A stretch of DNA of 64,000 nucleotides, from contig NIVC01001319.1 of NCBI GenBank assembly GCA_002269645.1, forward strand, positions 62,001 to 126,000. Direction: 5' to 3'. Position 1 is the first letter of the stretch. Each line of letters starts with the position of its first letter. This document shows positions 8,014-58,080 of the stretch, one piece after another. The notes under the pieces were generated by a model. It searched no databases. It was not told where the DNA came from and worked only from the letters and a program-made list of their open reading frames with translations. The translations under genes and the position numbers were made by a program. Origin of the DNA: Macrostomum lignano. Its lineage: Eukaryota.

Positions 8014-9435
<1,422 letters not shown>

Positions 9436-13359: not shown

Positions 13360-13870
13360 TGACCTTGACCCACTTGCGATCAGCTGTACTCACTAATTGT
13401 AAGCTTGACCAAGTAAGATCTTGACCTAGTTCTGACCGTGACCTACTAGTTCTGACCTTGACCTTACTATGACCTTTACCTACTAATTATGACCTTGACG
13501 TACAAATTATGACCTTGACCTACTAATTATGATCTTGACGCACTAGTTATGACCTTGACCTACTTACTAAGACCCTGATTTAGTTATAATGACCTTGACC
13601 TACTAATAATGACTTTGACCTACTAATTTAGAATTTGACCTACTAATTATGACTTTGATCTAATTTTTATGACTTTGAGTTACTAATTTTGACCCTGATC
13701 TACTTATTGTGACCTTGGCTCACTTGAAACAAACAATACCTAATTAACCATGTCCATGGAAAAAATTACTACAAAAATTTGACTCACTAGTTATGACCCT
13801 GACCCATTAACACAGTAATAATGCGACCCCACTGAAAATGACCTTGACCCACTAGTTAGGACCCTGACCA
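13360..13870. repeat. Degenerate ~20-bp minisatellite (TATGACCTTGACCTACTAAT)
   Basis: Recurrent GACCTTGACC units. Confidence 0.85.
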
Positions 13871-13888
13871 GCTTGCGCCAGCGCAGGC

Positions 13889-16800
13889 TCAGCCGGAGTT
13901 GGCCAGCATCTGTCTCAAGTCGCGAACAGCGGCATGCAGTCGCGGGTCCTCGGACTCCTCGATGGCGGACCCGCCGACAGGCATCGCCGAGTGCGGGCGC
14001 GCTGCCCGCTGCTGCTGCTTCTCTGAGGCGGCCGCCGCCGCCGCGGCCTGCAGGAGGTTCCGCTCGCCCTCCACCAGGCGCAGCCGATCCCGCAGTCGCT
14101 CCGTGGCCAGCTGAAAGTCTTCAACAGCCTGACGGCCTTGAGCCTCGGCGGCCTCGCGTTCCCGCTGCAGCCGGCGCTCCGACTGGGCCAGCGCGGCCGC
14201 CAGCTTCGCCTGCTCGCGCGCCGACGCGTCCAGCGCGTCCGCGTGGCACCCGGCTTCGAGGCGGCGCGCCTGGCGCTCCGAGTCCAGCGCTGATCGAGTT
14301 TCGGACAGGGCGGCGCGAAGCTCGGACACCGAGGAGAGCTCGGACAGCTGCGAGCGGGTGAGATTGATGGACTGGGGTGAGATTGGTGGACTGGGGTGAA
14401 ATTGACGATCTGGGGGGAGATTGATGGACTGGGGGAGATCGATGGACTGGAGTGAGATGGATGGACTGGGGGAGATTGATAAACTAGGGTGAGATTGATG
14501 GAGTGGGGTGAGATTAATGGAGTGGGGGAAATTGATGAAGTGGGATGAGATTGATGGACTGGGATAAGATTGATGGAGTGGGATGAGATTGATGGAGTGG
14601 GGTGAGATTGACAATTCAGGAGTGAGATTAACTAAGTGGGTAAGATTGAGACTATTAAATCAGACAGTAAAACATGCCGCCTCTGCACCTTCTCGGACGC
14701 GGCCAGCTGGTCGGTGGTGTCGGCCAGGCGGCCGAGGCGCCCCTCCATGTCGGTCAGGCGCTCCATCCACAGCCCGGCCGCAGATTCGAAGGCTGCCCTG
14801 GCCGATTCAACAGCCTCGGCCGCTTCGCTCGCCTCTCGCGCCCGACGCTCTGCCAGACGCCGGGCGTCCGACTGAAGCCGCTCCGCCAGCCGGTCCGCAG
14901 CGGCCAGCTTGCGCTCGGCGGCCGCAGCGCGCGCCTCCGCCTCGTCTAGGCGGCGGCGAAGATCGGAAACTGCGGCCTCGGCTTCGGCCTCCTACAGGGG
15001 TGGGGATTGGGACTCTCAGTGACCTTTGAGTGTGCCTGAGTGTCCATGTCTGCCTGCCTGTCTGTCTGCCTGTCTACCCCACCTACCGTCTGTTTCAGCT
15101 GCCTGTCTGCCCCACCTAACATCTGTCTCAGCTGCCTGTCTGCCCACCTACCATCTGTCTCAGCTGCCTGTCTGCTCCACCTACCGTCTGTCTCAGCTGT
15201 CTGTCTGCTCCACCTACCGTCTGTCTCAGCTGTCTGTCTGCCCTACCTACCGTCTGTCTCAGCTGCCTGTCTGCCCTACCTACCGTCTGTCTAAGCTGCC
15301 TGTCTGCCCCACTTACCGTCTGTCTCAGCTGTCTGTCTGCTCCACCTACCGTCTGTCTCAGCTGTTTGTCTGCCCACCTACCATCTGTCTCAGCTGCCTG
15401 TCTGCTCCACCTACCGTCTGTCTCAGCTGTCTGTCTGCCCTACCTACCGTCTGTCTCAGCTGCCTGTCAGCCCTACCTACCGTCTGTCTCAGCTGCCTGT
15501 CTGCCCTACCTACCGTCTGTCTAAGCTGCCTGTCTGCCCCACTTACCGTCTGTCTCAGCTGTCTGTCATGCGCCCAGCGCTCAGCCTCGGCCTGCACCAG
15601 CGCCTTGTACAGCCGGGGCCTCCAGGCCGCAGCCTCGCCGCCAGCGCTGGGCTCGGCAAGCAGCTCGGACTGCAGGGCCAGCCGGCGTTCCCGAAGCTCA
15701 GCGTCGGCTCGAAGGCGTTCGTTTTCAGCCTCAAGCTGGGCGGCTCTGGTGGCCAGGGCGTCGCGACTGTCATCCCAGTCCTGCATTGTAAAGCAGTCTA
15801 GGTTGTGAGAAACAACTCGAGAATCGAATAGATCTACATGTGTCTATAGATGCCTGTCATTGATCTACATCTCTGTGTCTGTAGATATACATGTGTCTAT
15901 AGATGCCTGTCATTGATCTACATCTCTGTGTCTGTAGATATACATGTGTCTATAGATGCCTGTCATTGATCTACATCTCTGTGTCTGTAGATATACATGT
16001 GTCTATAGATGCCTGTCATTGATATACATCTCTGTGTCTGTAGATCTACATGTGTCTATAGATGCCTGTCATAGATCTACATCTGTGTCTGTAGATGTAC
16101 ATGTATCTATAGATACCTGTAATTGATCTACAAGCGTCAATAAAGACGTGGTATAGATCTACATGTGTCCATAGATGCCTGCTGTACATCCACATGTGTC
16201 TATAGATTCCTACTGTAGATCAAAATGGTCTCTGTAGACGTCGGCTATAGACGTACAAGTGTTCATAAATGCTTGCCATTGATCTACAAGCGTCTATAGA
16301 AAAGTGTTATGGATCTCTACAAGTGTCTATAGATGCCTGCTGTAGATCTACACGTGTCTATAGATACCTAGAGATATCTGGAGATCCACGAGTCTATAGA
16401 GACCTGTGTAACCACGATGCCCTATAGATTTAAGCTTCTGTTTACACATGTCTATAGAAAAACCCGCTGCAGATCTACAGGCGCCTATAGATTCCTGATT
16501 TTCTACCGCTCAAAACATGTGCCTACAGATGTCTGCTCAATATCTACAGACACTAATACTCAAAAGATTTGTCTGTACAGCAACAGGCGCTCGGCTCACC
16601 CGCAGCGTTGGCTCAGCCAGCTCCATCCGCTGCTGCCTCTCCTGATCCAGCAGGCTCTGCGTCTCCAGCTGCTGCCGCCGCAGCCGCTCCAACTCTCGAC
16701 GTTGCCGGGCGAGGTCGCGCTCAAGCTGCCGGCAGGAGCGGCACGGAGCCGCCGCAGGAGGGGCGTCGGCAGGGACAAACCGAACCGAGTGCGGCGCCGC

Positions 16801-31996: not shown

Positions 31997-34693
31997 TTAT
32001 AGTTCTTCGATTAGCCGTCTTGGGGGTATGCCTTTATTCATTCGACCAGATCGCCGGGCTTGCGGGTGCTGGACCCTTGTGGTGGGCTCCAGGTCAATGT
32101 CGACCGTCGACGCCTGGGCCGGCCTGAAGGGAACCAGGTTCCGTGCAGTCCAAACTTTTCCATTGTCGAGGCGATAGGTGAATCTGCCCAAAACTTCTTG
32201 AATGAGGAAGGGTGACGTAAATGGTGATTTGCCTTTCGGCACATGTGGGAGTCGGATGCGCACCATGTCGTTCAGTTTGAAATGTTGCCGAGTACTCGTT
32301 CCGGCTCCAGTTGCTTGCGGGTCGCTAGAATCGCAGCTCTTTAGCTCCTCCGCAATTGGCTTCTCAATTTCTAGTTTACGGGGCTGAAACTTTGTTCGGA
32401 TATCCCGCCCTAGCAGCAGTCGTGCTGGTGAGTCGCCGTCTTCGTTAGGCGTCGTCCGATAGCTGCAGATGACTTGCTGCATTCCCTCTTCGAAGCTTCT
32501 CTTATCCGCTTCAAAGGTTTGCGCAGCATGCTTAAGTGTCCGGTTAAAAACTTCTACTTTACCATTTCTCCTTGGCTCATATAGCGGAACGCAGTCATGC
32601 CTGATGTCGCGCGAGGCGAGGAAGTTTTTCATTTCAGTGGAGACGAAGCTGCTTCCATTGTCGGACACCAGGACATCCGGGTTTCCAAAACGGTCGAATG
32701 TTTCCGTCAGCCACTTGATAATCTTCGCCGATCTGATGTCTCCAGTCAGGAGAATTTCAGGGTAGGACGAGTAGTAGTCTATCAAGGCAACAATAAATCG
32801 CTGAGTTTGAGGAGCTATCGCGAATGGGCCAGAGATGTCGATTGCCAGCTTTGACCACGGGCGCTCAGGCTTTTGTATAGAATTCCCGTCTGGTACAATG
32901 ACTCTATGGGACTTTGCGCTGTCCTGACAAGCTAGGCAATGCTTGACGTAGTTATTGATTGCTCTGTCCATATCTGGCCACCAGTAAGCAGATCGCAGGA
33001 GACGCTTCATCCTCACAATGCCGGGGTGTCCTTCATGCGCGCGTTTTAGTATTTGCGGTTGTAGTTTAGAAGGCGGCACAATTTGTTCGCCACGAAATAA
33101 AATGTTCTTGTCAATCGTCAGTTCATCCTGGACTTGTCGAAAGGCACTAGCTTCCGATCGTTTGTCGATAGGTCTGGAGAGTCGCGTAGATTCCATTACA
33201 ATCTGCAATAGCTCATCGGTCTTCGTCAGTTCTTGCAAGTTCTGCATATTTATGTTAATTGCACTGCTGACTGCAAGGATGCTCTTGACCGTATTTTCGT
33301 TGTCCATATCGACATCTCTTATTCCGTCGTTAATGGGGAGCCGCGAAAGGGCATCAGCCACCTTGTTGGTGCTTCCTGGCTTGTAGATAATATCGTAACT
33401 GAATTCGGACAGTCTTACAAGCCAGCGAGTGAATTTAGCTGATTTTGTCTTATTAGTGTGGTGTCGAAGAAGACTTGTGAGCGCTGAATGATCGGTCTGC
33501 AGGGTGAACTGCCGTCCAAGCAGATATTTGGCAAAATGCTCACATGCCCAGACGCAAGCGAGGGCTTCGCGCTCGTTCACTGCGTAGTTTCGTTCCCTAT
33601 CAGACAGTGTGTGGGACGCGAAAGAGATAGGTACTTCGTTACCATTCGGCTGTCGTTGCGAAAGGACCGATACTTCGGCAGCCGTGTCGAGGAGAGCGCT
33701 GTAGCTGCCTCTCTTGCCTACAAGGGTGACTTCGACGGACGGCGTCTCGTGTCTGCTGACCAGTCTCACCTTCTCGCGGACATGGTTGACGCTCTTCTTC
33801 TGGGTTCTCCTCTGGGATATTATACACTGCGCTGCAAAATGGTTAGGTTTGCCACATCCTTTGCACAATTTTCCAAGGGCTGGACACTTTGGGTCACGAT
33901 AGAGATGAGTGTTGGATCCGCAACCCATGCACTGCTTATTATGTTGTTTTCCCTTGTCAAAGCGTGCGGGTGGGGCACCGGCATCTGCTTTCCGTCGACG
34001 TGGCGGCCCACTTTTAGAGCTCGGCTGGCTTTGCACTTGCTGAACTGGGGCTGGAGCGCCGCTTCGGATTATCTGGCCGGTCTCGGTGGCTGCTTCATCG
34101 GCCCGCATAGCGGTCAGAAACGTCTGCAGATCGATGGCTTGCTCAGTTAATAGCTTCTCCTGGGTGCTCTTTGACGCGCAGCCGATGACAAGCTGCATTG
34201 CCAGTTGGCGGTCTTCGCCGGCTCCGTACTCGCAGTCCGTGATTAGCGTGCGAAGGGCAGTAAAGTAGTCATTTACCGACTCGCCCGTTTCTTGCTTGCG
34301 GCGTCGAAACTCATATTCGGCTCGGACGGGGTTTTTCGCCGTTGAAAATATTGGCTTCAGCTCATCGACATACTCTGTGAAGCTGGAGTTCTCTTTGTCC
34401 TTCACGCAGTGTGCGTAGAGAATTCGTCTTCCTTCAGACCCCAAAGACGTACGCAGAAATGCTTTCTTAAAAGCCTCCGAGAGCTGTGTGCCTGTTGTCG
34501 TCTCTGTAAGGTAGTAGAAATCCGATACCTCTCTTTGCCAGATGTCCCACTTGGTTGTCGGATCGCCAGGTAGCTCCAGAAACTTGGACGGTTGTGGTAT
34601 TGAGACGCGGATTGCTTGGTGATTCGTCGTCGAGGCCAATGGTTCTCGGCTCGTATTCGGCTTTCCTACCGGCGGTGGCGTCTTTGGCGGCAT
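31997..34693 (-). CDS. Gag / partial protease / partial RNase H / integrase polyprotein, ~898 aa
   Basis: Gag with CKGCGKPNHFAAQC knuckle; LLDTAAEVSVLS joined directly to EVPISFASHTLSDRERNY...TDHSAL (RNase H); HEGHPG...CLAC zinc finger; integrase D,D35E (IDISGP, SDNG, NGKVE). No RT motifs. Confidence 0.93.
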   Translation of the reverse strand: MPPKTPPPVGKPNTSREPLASTTNHQAIRVSIPQPSKFLELPGDPTTKWDIWQREVSDFYYLTETTTGTQLSEAFKKAFLRTSLGSEGRRILYAHCVKDKENSSFTEYVDELKPIFSTAKNPVRAEYEFRRRKQETGESVNDYFTALRTLITDCEYGAGEDRQLAMQLVIGCASKSTQEKLLTEQAIDLQTFLTAMRADEAATETGQIIRSGAPAPVQQVQSQPSSKSGPPRRRKADAGAPPARFDKGKQHNKQCMGCGSNTHLYRDPKCPALGKLCKGCGKPNHFAAQCIISQRRTQKKSVNHVREKVRLVSRHETPSVEVTLVGKRGSYSALLDTAAEVSVLSQRQPNGNEVPISFASHTLSDRERNYAVNEREALACVWACEHFAKYLLGRQFTLQTDHSALTSLLRHHTNKTKSAKFTRWLVRLSEFSYDIIYKPGSTNKVADALSRLPINDGIRDVDMDNENTVKSILAVSSAININMQNLQELTKTDELLQIVMESTRLSRPIDKRSEASAFRQVQDELTIDKNILFRGEQIVPPSKLQPQILKRAHEGHPGIVRMKRLLRSAYWWPDMDRAINNYVKHCLACQDSAKSHRVIVPDGNSIQKPERPWSKLAIDISGPFAIAPQTQRFIVALIDYYSSYPEILLTGDIRSAKIIKWLTETFDRFGNPDVLVSDNGSSFVSTEMKNFLASRDIRHDCVPLYEPRRNGKVEVFNRTLKHAAQTFEADKRSFEEGMQQVICSYRTTPNEDGDSPARLLLGRDIRTKFQPRKLEIEKPIAEELKSCDSSDPQATGAGTSTRQHFKLNDMVRIRLPHVPKGKSPFTSPFLIQEVLGRFTYRLDNGKVWTARNLVPFRPAQASTVDIDLEPTTRVQHPQARRSGRMNKGIPPRRLIEEL

Positions 34694-34703
34694 CGGTTCG
34701 CAA

Positions 34704-34716
34704 ATCCTCGTCGCCA
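34704..34716 (-). promoter_or_regulatory. Primer-binding site complementary to tRNA-Ser(GCU) 3' end
   Basis: TGGCGACGAGGAT 2 nt inside the 5' LTR; matches the animal tRNA-Ser(GCU) end AUCCUCGUCGCCA (from memory). Confidence 0.8.
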
Positions 34717-36559
34717 ATTGATGTGTTTTGAAATGAAATCGTAGTGTTAATTCGTAAAGTAATTTGTATATTTATTTTCACTCCGAAGAGTGGAATCGTA
34801 AGCAAGCGCAGTTCTGAGAAAACAAAGTTCGTCTGGGCCGTCTCTCTTTCTAGAGAGCAAACGTTAGGAGGTTAGGCCATAGATGTGCTTCGACTAAACC
34901 ACACATCAATTTGGTTGCCTAGACAACTGGGTTCGAATTTAATCCTTAACCCGAACAGTGGTCTCTTGCATTGTGCACCGCACCGAAATATTTATTCCAA
35001 ATGCTTATTTAAAACATTTACTCAGTCTTGCTCATAATTGCTTAATTTGGTTTATCACCTTGCCCACCTTTTTTAATGAACTGAAAATGAAGTAGCAATC
35101 TTGCAATTGCATTTTTGGGCCAAGTGTCCACTCATCCAGGTAACTGAGGGGTTAATGAATGGTCGCGAATTTTGGGCGCTTTGTGCCCCGATGAGTAAGC
35201 GCCGCCGCCTCCTCGTGTCAGTCTGACCCCCTTGTGGATAGAGAATTTAATTGGGTTATTTGTCCCATCCTTGTTACTCTCCGGTCGGCACTGCGTATTC
35301 CGATAATTGAGCCACTTAGAAAAGCAAATAAAAATCTCATTCCAAAATACCACTAAAATCAAACCACAATATAGCTAGTAAATGTTGTTCCAGAGAGGGA
35401 AATGAGTCTAGTTCCTTCTCTAAGAACCTTGATATCTTTCCTTTTAACAGGATGACCGAGCAGCCAGCACTGCCTGAGGATCGGGATCTGGAGCTCTGAC
35501 GAGCCACCCAGAAGGTGGAGCTGCTGCGCTGGATACGGAGGTTTGGCATCTCTGCGCCCGAAATAGAATCAGCACGGCAGAGGTCCCCTGCCTAAACGTT
35601 GGGAAGACGGCGGATGAAATCGCCAAGCAGGCCCGCAACACCCGAAGATCCGCCCAACGACGCCTCAATCGACACTTAAAGGCAGAGGCGGCGAAAGAGG
35701 CCAAGCGGACGTCGTCAGGAAACCCGTCGGCAAACCAGGCAACGGAGTCCGTGGGTCGACCCGGGTCTTTCCGGATCTCGCCTATAGCAGAAGCATCAGT
35801 CGAGCGAATCCAGCGGCTGTGGGCCGTGATGCCAACGTCGGCTGCGCAGATTCAGGAGGAGATACCTCTGCCAAAGGTTGCACCACCAGCGATTGCGCTA
35901 CCTAGGGTCCTGGCCGAGCGACAGACTCTGCAGTGCAGTGACAACCTGACCTTGCTGCCGTAGTGATTGAAATTATTTGGTTTGTCACACTTTGTAATTG
36001 AGCCTGTCAAATGTTTTTTTTATTCTGTGAGCGAGCTAATCAATTGCTAATCCCTGTAACTGCATCCACTTAATCCGCTAATCTCGTCATTGACTATAAC
36101 TACTTTATTAACTTTCATGACTGCTTTGGTGCAGTAACCCTTATTGTCGAACTAATTAAGTATATTTACTTTCGTATGGGAGTGGTGTAACGTGCTAAGT
36201 TTTATGTGAAGTTTCCCTTGCTCGAGGGATATTAATTAACAGTGTCATCCGTGCTCTTATAGTAGGTCGTCGATGTATATTGACAATTATTTTGGTAATA
36301 ATAATACTAACAGTACTAGAATATATTAATAATGCTATTGACTACTATTGAAATAAAAAAAACGTTACTAATCACTTTATTGGTCAAATTAGTTTTTTTA
36401 GTTTTTTCATTAGTCCAGATCAGAAAAGAGTTGTGGTCACAGTCTCTGTGTATTCTGTAGTTGTGGTAGTGCTCCTGGGATATAACGTAGTATCGTAAAT
36501 AGTAATTAAATATGTATACATAAAAAATGAAAAATCTGTCCTTTTTCGAAAAGAGAGGA

Positions 36560-42830: not shown

Positions 42831-42959
42831 AAGGTTTTGTTTATTTAAACAGTAAGTTGCTTGATGAAGCTATTTCTGATCCAAAATATTAGGGTAGCCT
42901 AAGGATAGTCTGTGCAGAGATAGATAATTGATACAGGTTAAAAGTGAAGATAGGGGGAC

Positions 42960-44690
42960 AGTCTGGTAGATAGGGAGACAAGTTGGTCGATAGGGAGACA
43001 GGTTGGTAGATAGGAAGACAAACTGGTACATGGGGAGACAAGTTGGTAGATAGGGAGACAAGTTGGTAGATAGGGAGACAAGTTGGTAGATACGGAGACA
43101 AGTTGGTAGATAGGGAGACAAGTTGGTAGATAGGGAGACAAGTTGGTAGATAGGGAGACAAGTTGGTAGATAGGGAGACAAGTTGGTAGATAGGGAGACA
43201 AGTTGGTAGATAGGGAGACAAGTTGGTAGATAGGGAGACAAGTTGGTAGATAGGGAGACAAGTTGGTAGATAGGGAGACAAGTTGGTAGATAGGGAGACA
43301 AGTTGGTAGATAGGGAGACAAGTTGGTAGATAGGGAGACAAGTTGGTAGATAGGGAGACAAGTTGGTAGATACGGAGACAAGTTGGTAGATAGGGAGACA
43401 AGTTGGTAGATAGGGAGACAAGTTGGTAGATAGGGAGATAAGTTGGTAGATAGGGAGACAAGTTGGTAGATAGGGAGACAAGTTGGTAGATAGGGAGACA
43501 AGTTGGTAGATAGGGAGACAAGTTGGTAGATAGGGAGACAAGTTGGTAGATAGGGAGACAAGTTAGTAGATAGGGAGACAAGTTGGTAGATAGGGAGACA
43601 AGTTGGTAGATAGGGAGACAAGTTGGTAGATAGGGAGACAAGTTGGTAGATAGGGAGACAAGTTGGTAGATACGGAGACAAGTTGGTAGATAGGGAGACA
43701 AGTTGGTAGATAGGGAGACAAGTTGGTAGATAGGGAGACAAGTTGGTAGATAGGGAGACAAGTTGGTAGATAGGGAGACAAGTTAGTAGATAGGGAGACA
43801 AGTTGGTAGATAGGGAGACAAGTTGGTAGATAGGGAGACAAGTTGGTAGATAGGGAGACAAGTTGGTAGATAGGGAGACAAGTTGGTAGATAGGGAGACA
43901 AGTTGGTAGATAGGGAGACAAGTTGGTAGATAGGGAGACAAGTTTGTAGATAGGGAGACAAGTTGGTAGATACGGAGACAAGTTGGTAGATAGGGAGACA
44001 AGTTGGTAGATAGGGAGACAAGTTGGTAGATAGGGAGACAAGTTGGTAGATAGGGAGACAAGTTGGTAGATAGGGAGACAAGTTGGTAGATAGGGAGACA
44101 AGTTGGTAGATAGGGAGACAAGTTGGTAGATACGGAGACAAGTTGGTAGATAGGGAGACAAGTTGGTAGATAGGGAGACAAGTTGGTAGATACGGAGACA
44201 AGTTGGTAGATAGGGAGACAAGTTGGTAGATAGGGAGACAAGTTGGTAGATAGGGAGACAAGTTGGTAGATACGGAGACAAGTTGGTAGATAGGGAGACA
44301 AGTTGGTAGATAGGGAGACAAGTTGGTAGATAGGGAGACAAGTTGGTAGATAGGGAGACAAGTTGGTAGATAGGGAGACAAGTTGGTAGATAGGGAGACA
44401 AGTTGGTAGATAGGGAGACAAGTTGGTAGATAGGGAGACAAGTTGGTAGATAGGGAGACAAGTTGGTAAATAGGGAGACAAGTTGGTAGATAGGGAGACA
44501 AGTTGGTAGATACGGAGACAAGTTGGTAGATAGGGAGACAAGTTGGTAGATACGGAGACAAGTTGGTAGATAGGGAGACAAGTTGGTAGATACGGAGACA
44601 AGTTGGTAGATAGGGAGACAAGTTGGTAGATAGGGAGACAAGTTGGTAGATAGGGAGACAAGTTGGTAGATAGGAAGACAAACCGGTAGA
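42960..44690. repeat. 20-bp minisatellite (AGTTGGTAGATAGGGAGACA), ~85 units
   Basis: Nearly invariant; the main variant is TACGG for TAGGG. Confidence 0.98.
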
Positions 44691-45361
44691 TAGGCTTACA
44701 AGTTAAAAAGTAGATCGGACTTGAAAATTCATCTGAAAACTTATTTGCAAGGATTTGAAAACAATGCTTTCTCAGAGAGAGCTGCTGCAGTTCCGCACCA
44801 GTTCATTGAGTCAGTGGCGCACGCAGGATTTTTGTGCGTCCACTACTTTTGTGAAGTGGCTTCTGTAGACAGCAGGTCATTTTTGCTCAGTGTTGTATCA
44901 AAGCGCGTCAACTGTTTGAAAAGCATCTTAAATGACACAGTGGCCTTGATTTCAGACTTAGTCGGTTAAATCAAATGAACTGATGGTGGTGCTAAATGAT
45001 GCCAACTGCTCATGATGACTGCGAGAGCACATCCGAGAGAAGGAACCGTGCAAAGTGTTGGAGTTGCTCAATTTTTTCCTAAACTTTTGGAGGTCATTAT
45101 GTGCAGAAGTTTTCAGAAAGGTAATAAGTCGGAGTCCAATCAACTTTGAATGCAGAGGGGATTTTGTCACGTGTATTTTTATTAGCAGTGTATTTTCACT
45201 TTATTATTCAGTAGGATTTCTTCGCGGGGTAACAAAATATTTGGACGAAAATCTGTTTGGACAAATTTTTTGAGATTGTCAAAGTTGCTTCAAAATATCC
45301 TGAGCGCTCGATTTGGCCAGTTGCAGCAGCACAAATATTCTGTGCCGTCATGCGAGTTTTG

Positions 45362-46408
45362 CTACAGAAGCAGCATCTCGATCTCCTTCAGCGAGTAGTA
45401 GAGAAAAAAGGGTAGCTTCCAAATGACTCCCTGTGCATAAGGTCCTCCGATGGCAACAGATGCGTCTCTGTACTTTCCGTTCGGGTGGGTGGCGAAACAG
45501 TTGCTAAACCACCAGGCTCCTTTAAACATTGTTGCGCAGTTACTAGGATGGGTGTCGTGCTCGGCGTCCTTCGTACTGAACTGCGCGCCGTTGCTCCTGG
45601 GAGCGAGGCTGTCGCCGATGCCGCCGCTGCCGGAGAAGCCGGACACGCTCAGCCGGTAGTTGTCTGACTCGGGACCCACGGAGAAGCTGGAGTACTCGGC
45701 CCAGTGCTCAGAGTCGTTCCACGCCTTCATCAGGATCCTCAGCTTCCGAGGACCAGAAGCAGTGAGAGCGTGGAGAGAGTTCAGGCCTGGGAAGATGCGG
45801 ACGTCATGGCGGTGTTTGTCATTGAAGTCCGAGTTGGAAAAGGAAGCGAATGGAGCAGATCTGGGATGCACTCACCGATCCAGTAGTTTCCGTCGGGTCC
45901 CTCGCCGAACTCGCTCTGGTACTGAGTCCAGTTGCGGTAAAAGTCCACTGAGCCGGACACCCTGTGCTGCACGGTGGTCCAGCAGTCACTGCCGGCTGTC
46001 TGCAAGGTGACACAGCAGGTGTGTCAGCTTTTCTACTCCGCGTTAAAGCGTGGCTGTAATGCTGACACATCTGACTGAGTGACTCACCCACACTCGCTGA
46101 GCTCCCTTGTTCGCATTTCGGCACTTCCTGCAGTGGCTCAGGCCCAGGCGGCATTTGAACTGAGCACACAGGCCGGAGCTGGCGTTGAACGCCACCAGCT
46201 GCAAAGCGGAGTCGCTGTTGGCAGCGACAATGCAGTCGACCTCATTCTGAGCTGAGTGTGACCTCACGGCCTCGTAGTCGGAAAGGCTTTTAAGACTCGG
46301 CCACCACCGTCGTCCGGAAGAAGAGGAGGCAGCTTCGGTCACGTGACGCGGGACTGCAGCGAGCAGCAGCAGCAGCAGAGCGACTTGACGAGCGGGTTGG
46401 AGCTGCAT
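45362..46408 (-). CDS. Secreted fibrinogen-related (FReD, ficolin/angiopoietin-like) protein; join(46088..46408,45876..45999,45362..45786), 289 aa
   Basis: Signal peptide [10 protein letters not shown]; [18 protein letters not shown]...FG...YWIGL, NYRLSV, FSTKD, CA...GAWWFSNC...NGKY are FReD motifs; two GTGAGT-AG introns of 88 and 89 bp preserve the frame. Confidence 0.93.
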
Positions 46409-50600: not shown

Positions 50601-51834
50601 AACTGTTAGGGCTGACATTGAGCAGGTGAGCTGCTGCTAGCAAACCTTTGATGAAAAACATCAGGATGCCGACTCTGAGGCCAACATATTATTTACATAA
50701 ATCAACATAATAAAAAAATACAAAACATGAAAATGTTACCGCTTTTAAAAAAACTACTTTACGATTCGCATTTAATGTAATAAAAATACATTTAAGTTTG
50801 TTAAGCTGTGTTAAGACTTGCAAATTTAAATGACTTTTGGATTTTCGTTTTCGGTTTGATTTTGAGTGCACACGCTTGCATGAGTGAGCGAATTAAACAG
50901 TTTCTACTGACAACTCTGCTAGCACATGCATATTTTTAACCCTTTTTTCCATTCGTTTTTTATGTATCGTATTTATTTTAGAAATATCTATTAAATAAAT
51001 AATTTTCACAATATATTTGCACTTTACTGTTTATTACATTATTGTGCATCAGTTGTATGGTTTGATGTAATGATGGCTCAATTGTTTGTATTGCAGTTTT
51101 AGTTAATAATAAAAATACAAATAGGAAAGTTGTTTCAGTAGCATTAGCAGACGTAGTAGTAAGTTACAAAAGATTGGGAAAGAAATGAATAAAAGCAATC
51201 AATGCTTATTTGCAAGCAATAAAATTCATAATTGTAATTCATTATTAAAGGTCATTAGTAAGAAGTTGTTACATTTGCATGATTATTGTCATAGACAAAA
51301 AGATTAATTAGGCATTTATGTAAATTAGAATATATTCATAATGTTTTAAGTTCTTTTCAGACTTATATTTTTGTTTTTTCTTTGTGTCTTTAGTCATTGA
51401 CATTGCCATCAATGTTAACAATGAATTTGTTTTTAACTCACAAAATTATTAATATAAGTTTGTTAATCTGTTAGTTAAAAAATCTTTATGGCAGTCCATT
51501 AACATTAATGAAAAATGTTAGTATTTTTTAATACTTATTAACCAACACTATGTAAAATTGTCTATTTTTGAGAAGCCATAAAAATTGTGCTTTTTGAAAC
51601 TTATATCATATTTCAACAAGGGTTTAGATTGGTAAAACCTAATGGTAATGGTTAGATGACTAAAATTGCTTTTATTTTCCTAAATAGTTAAATTTGAATT
51701 AAAACATGCAGACAGATATCCAAAAAATTTAGTGAATAAATATAAGGAAAACAAATTCCCTGTATATTGTTTTCAAACAATAATCTTGATTGCAATTTTA
51801 ATTTCAAGTGCAATTCATATTTCAGGAATAAAAA

Positions 51835-54800
51835 ATGACATTCCATCAATCTGCTTGGCTACATTCATTTGACAGACAAGTTAACCTGGGTCAGCAATAC
51901 TCAGTAGAGTCGGACAGCTTTATTGAGAGTTTGCATGGCGATTCCTCCCCTGGAGGAGACTTCAGCTTCAAGGATGCAGTCAGCAACAAAAAAATAGAAA
52001 TATTCGTTGACAGTTCGGATACATTTTTGAGCGATGTCGCTGCTCTCGGCCTGACTGCTCTGCAAGCTCTGAAGCTGATTTGTCATGGATCGTCAAGTAA
52101 TGTCAATTGTTCGCTTCAAGACCTGCTGCATTACCTGTGGGACAACTGCGACTTCTCCAAGCAGCTAGTGATAGGCGTTCTCCAAGAAAAATGCGTCTCT
52201 GCCAGTGCAGTTGATCAGGGAGGTGTAAAGCCTGGTGAAGTATCCTGCGTGTCGCAAGGGTGGCTGCTGTGTGGAATCGTCAAAGGTAGGACCCTTCGAT
52301 GTCGCATTAAGATATTAAGGCATAAAATATGTGTTGTTTAAACTTTTTACTTAGTTATTTTATGTTTCCTTTTTAGGCGATGGCGACATTAAAACGGCCA
52401 AGATCAAAACATTTTTAAATGGCACCGTGGTACTAATGGATCTGTCTGAGTTTAAAGACTCCCTCGAAAAAATGGATGCTGTTCCTGAGGGAGCACTTCA
52501 TGCTGCCAATCTGTTTAAAGTTTTCGATGCCAGCAATCAGCTGCGTTCCGCTCAGGAGTGTAGTACCAGTACAGATGTGCTGCAGCGGCTATACGAAGGT
52601 CAGAAGGTGGCTCGAAGTATTGAGGAGCTTCTGGGCTACAAAGTGCTACACGATGTTCCGTATCTGCGAGAAACACTGACTACAGCTTTGCAGTTTGTGC
52701 AGAATAAGGTTACGATGAACAAAGTTCGAGTTAGAAACAGCACCCAGACACCCGCATCTCTGAAGGACTGCATTCCTTTCGTTCCCAGCTTTAGCTGGTT
52801 GCCAATGCTGGGTGAGTTTCTCGATGTCCTAACAGCTATATCACAGCTGTCAAACTCGAAAGCTTTTGAACCGGCTGATGGTAAGACCTGCTGTACCGTG
52901 TCGTTGGTATTTCCAACCGATGCGCCAAAGTTGCTGCAATGGGAGAAGCACTGGGAGAATTTCGATCTTGCGACTGCTCTCAAAGATTGTACTCGAAGTT
53001 TTCAAGCTATGCTGAGGGTAATTCAGGCTAATGATCATGGCGATTGGCAGCTTTGCATAAAGATGCAACAGCAAGCCGAAAAGATAATTCATGCTCACAT
53101 TACACTTGAACGTCTTGACTCAAAATTATGCTCTATTGAGAGTTTTTTGGTATTTCATGCTGTTGAGTCCGTGCGTTCTGCGTCAAATGCAATTGAGTTG
53201 CTATTTTCACCTCTGAGTGCTGCTGATTTTAAAGAGAATGAAATTCAAGGTGTGTCGATTCGCTACAAGGAAGAACAGAGCAATGAGTGGACGGAAGTAA
53301 TCAAAATCTTTGGCCCAAACGTTGGAACTGCTCTTCTTGAGCAGTTGAAAATGGGTACCGCCTATCAGATGTCCTATCAGACCATTCGGATGTTCGGTCG
53401 CTGCGAAGTGAAAAATATGCCAATGGTGACAACATTGGCATGCGCCGCTCCGGACATTGCTTCAATTACGCAGGTGTCCCCATTTCGTGTGGAACTAGAA
53501 CTGACTCCGCCTGTATTGCAGCAGCAAAAAGCCCGTCTGGTTGGTTATCAAATCACTGTGCTCAAACAGGGACACAGCTCAGGCCATGAGACTTATGTTA
53601 AGACTGATTCTTCGCAAAAGACTGTTCCCATCGAAGTCAATGGAGATGGCTGCTATACATTTTCTGTTTCAGCAGTGCTCTCAGATGACTCTGTTGGAGA
53701 GCAGAGCAAGAATGTCACCCTAGAAGTGAAATCGACAGCAGCGGACCGAATGAAGTATAATTTGCTCAACTCTTCTCTACTACTGGATTCTGAGGCTAAG
53801 CTGCCTCTTGAGTACGAGTTGCAAATGGACCAGACGTTCTGGGATCCAGTGCACCAAGTTCGAAAAATGGAGCTTGGACGCGATAGCTTGTCCGGAATTG
53901 ACGAAAAAGTGATTATGATCGTCGGTGAAACTGGCTCTGGAAAAACTACCCTGATCAACTCGATGGTCAACTACATCTTCGGAGTAAAGTACGAAGACCC
54001 GTTTCGCTTCAGAATCATTACAGATCCGAAGGAGAAGAAACTTAGGACATCTCAGTCAATGAGTCAGACTCAATGGGTCACATCCTACACATTCCACCAT
54101 CGCGATGGCTGTCAGCAACCTTGCTCGTTGACTCTGGTGGACACGCCAGGATTTGGTGACACTGGCGGCATCATGAACGACAAGAAGATTGTCGACCGAA
54201 TCAGAGAGTTCTTCTCTTCCCCAGGCGGCATTGACCACTTGGATGCTGTGGGCTTTGTGGTGCCATCGAGTGTCGCCAGACTGACGCCAACGCAGCGATA
54301 CGTTTTCGACTCGATCCTCTCTCTGTTCGGTAAGGATATTGGCGACAATATCTACATGCTAATCACATTTGCTGATGCAAATGTACCTCCTGTGCTCGAG
54401 TCCCTCAAGGAAGCGAGGATCTCCTACAATTTACACATCAAATTCAACAACTCTGCTGTATTTGCGAAGAGTCAGGAAATGGACCAGATGAGCCAAATGT
54501 TCAACAAGATGTTCTGGGATATGGGAATGAACAGCTTCCAAGGATTTTTCTCCCATTTGATGAAGATTACGGCAAAGAGCCTGACCCTGACCAAAGATGT
54601 TCTAAGTGAGCGGCAGAGACTGCAGACTCACTTAATTGCTATCAAGGCGGAGATCGACCAAGGTCTGAGCAAGTTGAATCAGCTGGAGCGCGAAATATCC
54701 GTTATCAAGGCTCACCAGTCAGATTTGGACCGCAACCGCAACTTCACATACACAGTTGTGGAAGACACAGCAGTTTGCCAGCCGATTCCTTCCGGAACTT

Positions 54801-55465
54801 ACATCACGAACTGTCTAACGTGCAACAGGACGTGTCACTATCCATGTGGAATTCCAGATGATAAAGACAAAGCCGGCTGCGCGGCGATGACAAATGGCAA
54901 TTGCCACGTGTGCAAAAGTGGTTGTGTGTGGTCGGTCCACAAGAACATGTCATACCAAATCGTTATCACTCAGCAAACTGTCACGAAAACGTCGGATGAC
55001 CTAAAAGGTCGCTACACCGATGCGGAGGGGAAACTGCTGTCTGCCAAGCAGCTGGCGCAGCGGGTGTACGAAGAGTATCTCGGGACGAAGGCCAACGTGA
55101 TGCAGCTGGTCAAGGAGAGCAAAAAGTGCATCGAGCGCCTGCAGCAGATCGCTCTGAAGCCTGACCCTCTGAACGAGGTTGACTACATTGACAAGTTGAT
55201 TGATGCCGAGCAGATGAGCAAGAATGATGGGTATTCCGACCGAATCCAACAGCTGCAGGATATTCGAGAGCTCGCTGTTCGAGCTGAGAACCTGAAGAAG
55301 GACGAGCTGCTGAATGTACTGCTGCAGAGCGAGACGCGAGTTTACCGCAGGTACGAAGAGTTTTTTGTAAAGCCAAGCGCCTCTGGCATCACTGCGCACC
55401 TCCGAGGCGGCTTCAAGAGGCTGAAGCGACTGTTCTATGAAGGTGGCGGCCACTCACAGGCTTAG
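51835..55465 (+). CDS. Multidomain P-loop GTPase (AIG1/septin-like) with FN3 repeats; join(51835..52285,52377..55465), ~1179 aa
   Basis: Phase-1 intron AAAG|GTAGGA...TTTTAG|GC of 91 bp joins the two ORFs in frame. G1 GETGSGKT at 53924, G3 DTPGFGD at ~54140, two FN3-like beta segments, coiled coil, and a CLTCNRTCHYPC...C...CHVC...C...H cluster. Confidence 0.9.

Positions 55466-56719: not shown

Positions 56720-58080
<1,361 letters not shown>

Follow-up and report, generated by a model that had tools for sequence, protein, structure and literature searches.

A diverged or swapped head on a Macrostomum lignano member of an animal-wide family of stonustoxin-like GTPase fusions

Introduction

MACPF/CDC proteins act only after oligomerisation, and their folds persist at undetectable sequence identity. 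Septins, Toc34 and GIMAPs act by nucleotide-dependent dimerisation or polymerisation. Here, we describe a gene of Macrostomum lignano whose predicted product carries a GTPase of the septin/Toc/AIG1 class behind two fibronectin type III (FN3) domains and an N-terminal region, hereafter the head, at the position that a stonustoxin-type MACPF module occupies in related animal proteins. The gene lies in a stretch of 64,000 nucleotides (contig NIVC01001319.1, positions 62,001 to 126,000 of the forward strand, assembly GCA_002269645.1), which was analysed as a whole and is referred to as the window.

In polychaetes, nemerteans, corals and fishes, SNTX-like genes have been discussed in the context of venom or immunity, stonefish ‘sntx-like’ genes have been reported to be longer than normal, and a 3804-nt ‘stonustoxin subunit alpha’ alignment has been reported in herring. 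No account in which a GTPase fusion was described or tested was found in the literature searched, which comprised a searchable library only. A preliminary description of the locus, made from the sequence alone, had proposed a fusion of a cytosolic perforin-like module with FN3 repeats, a GTPase and a cysteine cluster. In this analysis, the gene is a member of a known but uncharacterised family, with a diverged or swapped head.

Results

The protein has 1179 residues, the numbering of which is used throughout. With residues 470–1028, encoded in exon 2, as the query, 1220 database relatives were detected at E ≤ 1e-3. Relatives outside M. lignano reached E-values down to ~1e-160 to 1e-240, with 35–51% identity over 80–98% of the query. 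These came from a sponge, echinoderms, crustaceans, an annelid, a nemertean, a rotifer, fishes, a frog, lizards and a turtle. The similarity spans the whole C-terminal module of ~560 residues, hereafter the engine. Upstream of it, the FN3 pair aligned with the pair of family members bearing a stonustoxin-type head (hhalign E = 7.6e-11, score 80.6, shuffle null 15.6 ± 2.3), a score which indicates that the two pairs are homologous. Judged by the similarity of the FN3 pair and the whole C-terminal half, the window protein belongs to this family, which has no curated name.

Around 50 of the best 120 relatives have precomputed Pfam matches to PF24674 and PF21109, and often to PF18078, ahead of the FN3 and GTPase domains. 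The first two are named MACPF_SNTX and Stonustoxin_helical in the database, and PF18078 is named Thioredoxin_11 in a preprint. Residues 3–393 of the M. lignano protein P0004 (BOX15_Mlig029040g1) match stonustoxin (4WVM, both chains) at E = 2e-42. A stonustoxin-type MACPF head joined to FN3, a septin/AIG1-like GTPase and a Cys cluster occurs in many phyla, including in P0004 and its fellow M. lignano protein P0005, and we refer to proteins of this layout as canonical members. The coupling of a perforin-like module to a GTPase, as put forward in the preliminary description, is real in these proteins, but for the window protein it is unsupported. In databases, some canonical members are named ‘stonustoxin subunit alpha’ (Podarcis lilfordi) or ‘neoverrucotoxin subunit beta(-like)’ (Portunus, Homarus). 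The fusion architecture is ancient and is already visible in public databases, in the form of automatic domain matches and misleading toxin-like names.

The same engine also carries other N-terminal modules, including a CARD (PF00619) in P0111 of Owenia fusiformis and long FN3 arrays (‘titin-like’) in P0080 of Lineus longissimus. Many proteins of 570–780 residues consist of a headless engine, for example P0041 and P0049 of the sponge Oopsacas minuta. Some relatives of ~1400 residues score as if they bear more than one engine.

The head of the window protein is of another type. It is shared (W-type, for window-type) by the window protein, for which P0002 is the database model, by its paralogue P0001 at locus L003, and by P0008. 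In precomputed Pfam annotation, no match lies before the GTPase in the window protein, P0001 or P0008, P0002 likewise has no MACPF_SNTX match, and BLASTP of P0001 against P0004 gave an alignment only from residue 580 onward. Our preferred reading, to which we give a joint probability of roughly 0.5, is that residues 1–412 descend from a stonustoxin-type module and have diverged beyond sequence recognition. The modelled helical and thioredoxin-like parts of the head seem to keep their folds, and the MACPF position (residues 1–214) is most likely a shortened version without the residues that are conserved across the family. A pore-forming function for the window copy is not supported.

The sole positive evidence of such a descent is a predicted one, from a second AlphaFold2 model comprising window residues 152–412 alone (alignment A3), with a mean predicted local distance difference test score (pLDDT) of 62. 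Among 350,542 PDB chains searched with Foldseek, the top match for this model was stonustoxin (4wvm_B, E = 1.9e-3, probability 0.97, 294 columns), followed by the thioredoxin-like structure 4euy (template modelling score 0.54, normalised to the target), with 1eru also matched. The helical bundle predicted for residues 215–309 possibly corresponds to the helical domain of stonustoxin. A thioredoxin-like α/β domain is predicted to follow it, and the motif CCTVSLVFP (residues 322–330), which the preliminary description had compared with a strand of the SNTX family, forms the first strand of this domain instead of one at the MACPF position. A fold search with the whole-protein model was uninformative on the head, as FN3 structures filled the top 50.

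A number of results weigh against a stonustoxin origin of the head. For residues 1–214, AlphaFold2 gave no usable model (pLDDT <50), although the alignment included more than 40 rows with a MACPF domain. The stonustoxin fold match is marginal, and SNTX-like rows in the alignment may have imprinted the fold on the model. Up to E = 10, no stonustoxin match was obtained in the PDB, either by phmmer of each exon or by a profile of four W-type proteins. In hhalign, residues 1–300 scored 22.4 against a profile of 38 canonical sequences, with column shuffles at 15.8 ± 2.9 (maximum 28.5) and the reversed sequence at 20.8, and residues 215–412 scored 15.7 against the helical/thioredoxin-like profile, with shuffles at 14.0 ± 2.6. 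An hmmsearch with the canonical head stayed at noise level, with reversed controls scoring equally. Among the 78 MACPF columns conserved at ≥80% in the family, the window protein matched 18 and P0008 matched 15, shuffled sequences matched 20 in both cases, and reversed sequences matched 8 and 10, respectively. GTP binding, oligomerisation, co-assembly with paralogues and a role in defence are all putative.

Faint placements on the canonical profile were collinear, each at noise level: residues 10–32 and 16–131 fell on its start and residues 218–262 on its helical part. An hhalign probability of 97.8 for residues 301–629 was considered as support for a thioredoxin-like domain and dismissed, as the signal came wholly from the FN3 pair and linker.

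Another view is that residues 1–430 are a working, very diverged MACPF/CDC pore former, whose oligomerisation and membrane insertion in the cell would be gated by the GTPase. Canonical members have exactly such an architecture, their fold class is known to outlast detectable sequence identity, the head is under purifying selection (see below), and the weak match of residues 16–131 to the start of the canonical profile is collinear. Nevertheless, the MACPF position offers ~214 residues, ~50 fewer than the ~265 of canonical members, conserved MACPF columns were matched no better than by shuffled sequence, all profile scores fell within the null range, and the 40-odd MACPF-bearing rows did not lift the modelled pLDDT of residues 1–214 to 50. 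We consider a working pore former improbable. The resemblance of the N-terminus (SFDRQVNLGQQYSVESDSFI, residues 11–30) to the start of stonustoxin and verrucotoxin, and the MACPF/CDC-like region said to follow it, did not rise above chance in any sequence test. Residues 1–430 had been set in advance as the ground on which the proposal could be refuted. Within them, residues 1–214 proved to be without MACPF/CDC sequence similarity, and residues 215–412 gave the marginal and possibly imprinted fold match to stonustoxin.

The distribution of the head is narrow. A phmmer search with residues 152–430 against 1.84 billion representatives returned P0003, P0008 (8e-13) and a marginal repeat protein (P0121), which was dismissed as a head relative because its matches were low-complexity repeats. 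Word-index searches with the window head found only the known M. lignano copies, and the same search with the head of P0008 found P0008 itself only. From these searches, the head type appears confined to M. lignano, where it is known from the window gene, the L003 paralogue and P0008.

Such a distribution would fit an outright replacement of the head, with residues 1–412 representing a new, lineage-specific module unrelated to stonustoxin and joined to the FN3 pair and engine by recombination or exon shuffling, which would leave an FN3-GTPase with an orphan head. We regard this as quite possible, if less probable than an origin by divergence. It would account for the lack of significant similarity to the canonical head in any sequence test and for the failure to find a head relative outside M. 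lignano, and it is in keeping with a family which swaps modules and bears other heads, such as the CARD in Owenia, the FN3 arrays in Lineus, and none at all in many sponge proteins. Canonical MACPF domains are also highly conserved, as the 78 columns indicate, and it would be odd for their signal to be lost in full while a fast-evolving FN3 pair remains detectable. What speaks for continuity instead is that the head has approximately the length and position of a canonical one, that it lies in one exon with the family-homologous FN3 pair, that the PDB fold search with residues 152–412 ranked stonustoxin first, and that the faint profile placements are all collinear. The preferred reading of a diverged stonustoxin-type head is weakened because module exchange within the family makes an outright replacement plausible.

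Evidence of this exchange comes from comparing trees of the two halves. The C-terminal module of the window protein is 75–79% identical to those of P0004 and P0005 and 63–68% identical to that of P0008, and a neighbour-joining tree of this region recovered ((window,P0001),(P0004,P0005)),P0008 in 100 of 100 replicates. The head, however, is common to the window protein and P0008 (31% identity) and is not found in P0004. As the C-terminal tree conflicts with the sharing of heads, the head plus FN3 and the engine would therefore have been exchanged as modules, with a boundary near residue 600, to which the domain trees point. The P0004 gene (L001, 6001–11885) has its sole intron, of 2.4 kb, at residue 588, which is the start of its similarity to the window protein. 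No W-type head was found when this intron was checked. P0004 appears to have one FN3 domain only. The P-loop lies at nearly the same distance from the N-terminus in both types, at residues 666–674 in W-type proteins versus 665–676 in P0004 and P0005.

The L003 copy shares 1087 identical residues (92%) with the window protein. It was considered as an allele and rejected, since the flanks of the two loci are unrelated, and it is treated here as a paralogue. The ratio of nonsynonymous to synonymous substitution rates (dN/dS) between the two was 0.30 overall. By region it was 0.44 for residues 1–214, 0.45 for residues 215–412, 0.52 for the FN3 pair, 0.12 for the linker and GTPase, and 0.20 for the long helix, Cys/His domain and tail. 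With values of 0.44–0.45 the head is under purifying selection, and it is therefore not decaying sequence. The gene as a whole is constrained, the head less so than the engine.

The gene itself is real and intact (Table 1). An open reading frame listing showed two open frames at the locus, 51835–52341 and, in a different frame, 52427–55465. Joining of the two exons across a GT..AG intron yields 1179 codons with a single terminal stop, which bears out the intact protein of ~1179 amino acids claimed at the outset. Exon 2 alone encodes the later part of the head, both FN3 domains, the GTPase and the tail. The splice junction is matched by two database gene models, P0002 of the window locus and P0001 of the paralogue, and the paralogous genes have an intron at the same position, of 77 nt on L003 and 1234 nt on L002. 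At L003, 8001–11620 holds an intact two-exon gene of 1179 codons, with exon 1 reaching to 8454 and exon 2 starting at 8532. An in-frame TAA does stand just after the upstream AG, as the preliminary description noted in favour of a start at ATG 51835, and this AG would be a cis or a spliced-leader acceptor. No tandem paralogue was found within the window.

Database models of these genes are imperfect. The UniProt model P0002 (1056 aa) skips 123 codons in frame (residues ~330–452, window ~52820–53190), although the genomic frame is open across this gap and the paralogue model retains these codons. The gap is probably a gene-prediction artefact, alternative splicing being the other possibility. 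Similarly, the NCBI model P0001 (1175 aa) differs from the exact translation of its own locus. Such deviations are what might be expected if the long frame were an artefact of gene modelling or assembly, or a decaying pseudogene, and not a functional gene. We hold this to be very unlikely, given that the frame is open over 1179 codons, with a canonical intron common to three loci, that a second locus keeps an intact copy of the same length, that dN/dS comes to 0.30 for the whole gene and 0.12 for the GTPase, and that every family-invariant residue is kept.

Table 1. Features of the window gene and its product, with positions in the window.
Feature	Position	Strand	Basis
Splice acceptor AG 51824-51825, in-frame TAA 51829-51831 and short leader	51824..51834	+	Read from sequence
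Exon 1: codons 1-150 and first base of codon 151	51835..52285	+	Junction identical in P0001 and P0002
Intron, 91 nt, phase 1, GT 52286-52287, AG 52375-52376	52286..52376	+	Canonical GT..AG
Exon 2: remainder of codon 151 to stop	52377..55465	+	Single uninterrupted exon
Head, residues 1-213, at position of MACPF domain, spanning the intron; lineage-specific	51835..52564	+	pLDDT <50; no signal above controls
Predicted helical bundle, residues 215-309	52568..52852	+	pLDDT ~65-80; 4wvm_B E=1.9e-3; sequence profile not significant
Predicted thioredoxin-like α/β domain, residues 322-408	52889..53149	+	pLDDT ~65-78; sequence profile not significant
Two tandem FN3 domains, residues 413-601	53162..53728	+	Model; Foldseek matches E ~1e-10
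Linker helix and small beta unit, residues 605-650, conserved, opening the C-terminal module	53738..53875	+	Model; alignment
Septin/Toc/AIG1-class GTPase, residues 660-879	53903..54562	+	Pfam Septin/AIG1; PDB septin/Toc matches; invariant motifs
Single long helix, probably coiled coil, residues 887-936	54584..54733	+	Model
Beta-rich Cys/His domain, residues 940-1022	54743..54991	+	Model; alignment
Helical tail, residues 1023-1179; modelled helices 1023-1145	54992..55462	+	Model; alignment

The remaining domains were assigned with a full-length AlphaFold2 model, which was built on P0001 (the 92% identical paralogue) from a 60-row alignment with a mean pLDDT of 70, and is reported in window numbering. 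The C-terminal half that the preliminary description had outlined, with an AIG1/septin-like GTPase, coiled coil, Cys/His cluster and helical tail, is seen in this model, the coiled coil as a single long helix, and its two FN3-like repeats were recovered by model, fold and profile matches alike. The motifs that it quoted were all located in the protein, and there is no hydrophobic N-terminal stretch, in agreement with its statement that a signal peptide is absent.

The GTPase carries a P-loop (GETGSGKT, residues 667–674), DTPGFGD (739–745, with DTPG at 739–742), TFAD (814–817) and KFNNSA (839–844). In family alignments the G, K and T of the P-loop, DTPG, the T and D of TFAD and the N of KFNNS are invariant, and all are present in the window protein. 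TFAD, with two invariant residues, would stand at the usual G4 position, and KFNNSA more likely at G5. For a profile of short family members, the nearest solved structures were septins (E = 3e-5) and Toc33/34 (E = 5e-4), with the PDB septin/Toc matches spanning ~85–110 residues only, from G1 to just past G3. A precomputed Pfam Septin match is on record, a precomputed AIG1 match is marked weak, and a PDB sequence search with exon 1 and exon 2 separately gave weak septin matches only. By these matches and motifs, the G domain belongs to the septin/Toc/AIG1 class.

The Cys/His cluster spans residues 963–1005 and comprises C963, C966, C970, H971, C974, C985, C993, C996, C1000 and H1005. These eight cysteines and two histidines correspond to invariant or nearly invariant columns of the family, and the domain presumably binds metal. 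No solved relative of it was found when the family profile was compared with the PDB. The helical tail is conserved to approximately residue 1140 and is variable at its end.

Elsewhere in the window, a frame of 906 codons on the minus strand (31997–34717) matches Ty3 Gag-Pol (reverse transcriptase/RNase H/integrase, E = 7e-25) as well as retroviral-type integrases, and by these matches it is a Ty3/gypsy-like retrotransposon pol region. An exon-sized frame at 45365–45871, also on the minus strand, encodes a fibrinogen C-terminal (ficolin-like) domain (ficolin-2, E = 7e-27). This places a lectin-type, ficolin-like gene ~6 kb upstream of the FN3-GTPase gene and on the opposite strand. Mini- and microsatellite arrays are dense at 1–24100, 42948–44694 and 56829–57135. 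They include (AGAT)n at 8014–9435, a 20-bp unit repeated 87 times at 42948–44694 and (TCTG)n at 56829–57135, and such arrays account for the blocks of extreme GC skew and for most of the spurious long open reading frames. The 20-bp satellite also occurs near the L003 paralogue (13785–14947), on the other side of that gene.

Discussion

Fusions of stonustoxin-type perforin-like modules with septin/AIG1-class GTPases are widespread in animals, from sponges to reptiles. A nucleotide-gated, cell-autonomous system for membrane attack or signalling is a plausible role for the family. By analogy with septins, Toc34 and GIMAPs, the engine may work as a GTP-dependent dimerising or oligomerising scaffold which assembles across its nucleotide-binding faces. 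The long helix and the Cys/His domain, which presumably binds metal, would be assembly elements. In canonical members, assembly of the G domains would bring the MACPF heads together. The GTP-gated perforin effector proposed in the preliminary description is a fair hypothesis for these members, but it is unsupported for the window gene.

In the window protein, the head would not form pores autonomously but would act as an altered output or partner module. Through its near-identical engine, the protein may assemble together with MACPF-bearing paralogues and modulate them, in defence or cell death. Co-assembly with P0004 and P0005 is possible because the engine is 75–79% identical to theirs and has been exchanged with them. 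More broadly, the family could serve cell-autonomous defence in animals as a modular GTPase system with swappable heads, in which the M. lignano head would be a new output or sensor module of undescribed fold, exchanged at an intron-marked boundary at ~residue 600; we put this forward tentatively, and rate it as somewhat unlikely.

In such a protein, strong constraint on the GTPase engine does not prevent the head from being remodelled or replaced until it is no longer recognisable, and head and engine have had separate histories, having been exchanged between paralogues. For annotation, this means that the window copy should not be labelled a toxin or pore former. Head remodelling and module exchange can also guide the choice of family members for study.

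Comparison with known systems

The window protein is closest to the canonical stonustoxin-head FN3-GTPases. Both carry FN3 domains, with the tandem pair of the window protein matching that of the longer canonical members, and from the GTPase through the long helix and Cys/His domain to the tail they have the same parts, with 75–79% identity to P0004 and P0005 over the C-terminal module and 45–51% to members from other phyla. In P0004, the spacing of the P-loop from the N-terminus is also the same. The difference lies in the head, for which neither Pfam nor PDB nor profile comparison gave a match to MACPF_SNTX, Stonustoxin_helical or Thioredoxin_11 in the window protein.

To the stonustoxin and neoverrucotoxin of scorpaeniform fish (4WVM), the window protein is linked by the marginal fold match (E = 1.9e-3) of its predicted helical and thioredoxin-like parts. 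Stonustoxin has no signal peptide according to the literature, and nor does the window protein. Its MACPF domain is not demonstrable in the window protein, and its alpha and beta subunits of ~700 residues end in PRY/SPRY (B30.2), in place of which the window protein has FN3, a GTPase and a Cys/His module; no search gave a PRY/SPRY match to the window protein. Stonustoxin is a venom protein, whereas the window protein does not come from a venomous animal.

With septins, Toc34 and AIG1 (GIMAP) proteins, the window GTPase shares the P-loop, DTPG and the adjoining regions. It differs in reading TFAD at the G4 position, and septins, Toc and GIMAP proteins are without the FN3 domains, long helix and Cys/His domain found in the 1179-residue window protein. 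NLR/STAND and GBP/IRG proteins offer an analogy in function only, as the window family has no sequence relation to NACHT/NB-ARC or dynamin-like GTPases. If the engine oligomerises as suggested, what the systems would have in common is a nucleotide-driven oligomerising engine combined with varied N-terminal modules, lineage-specific expansion and module exchange.

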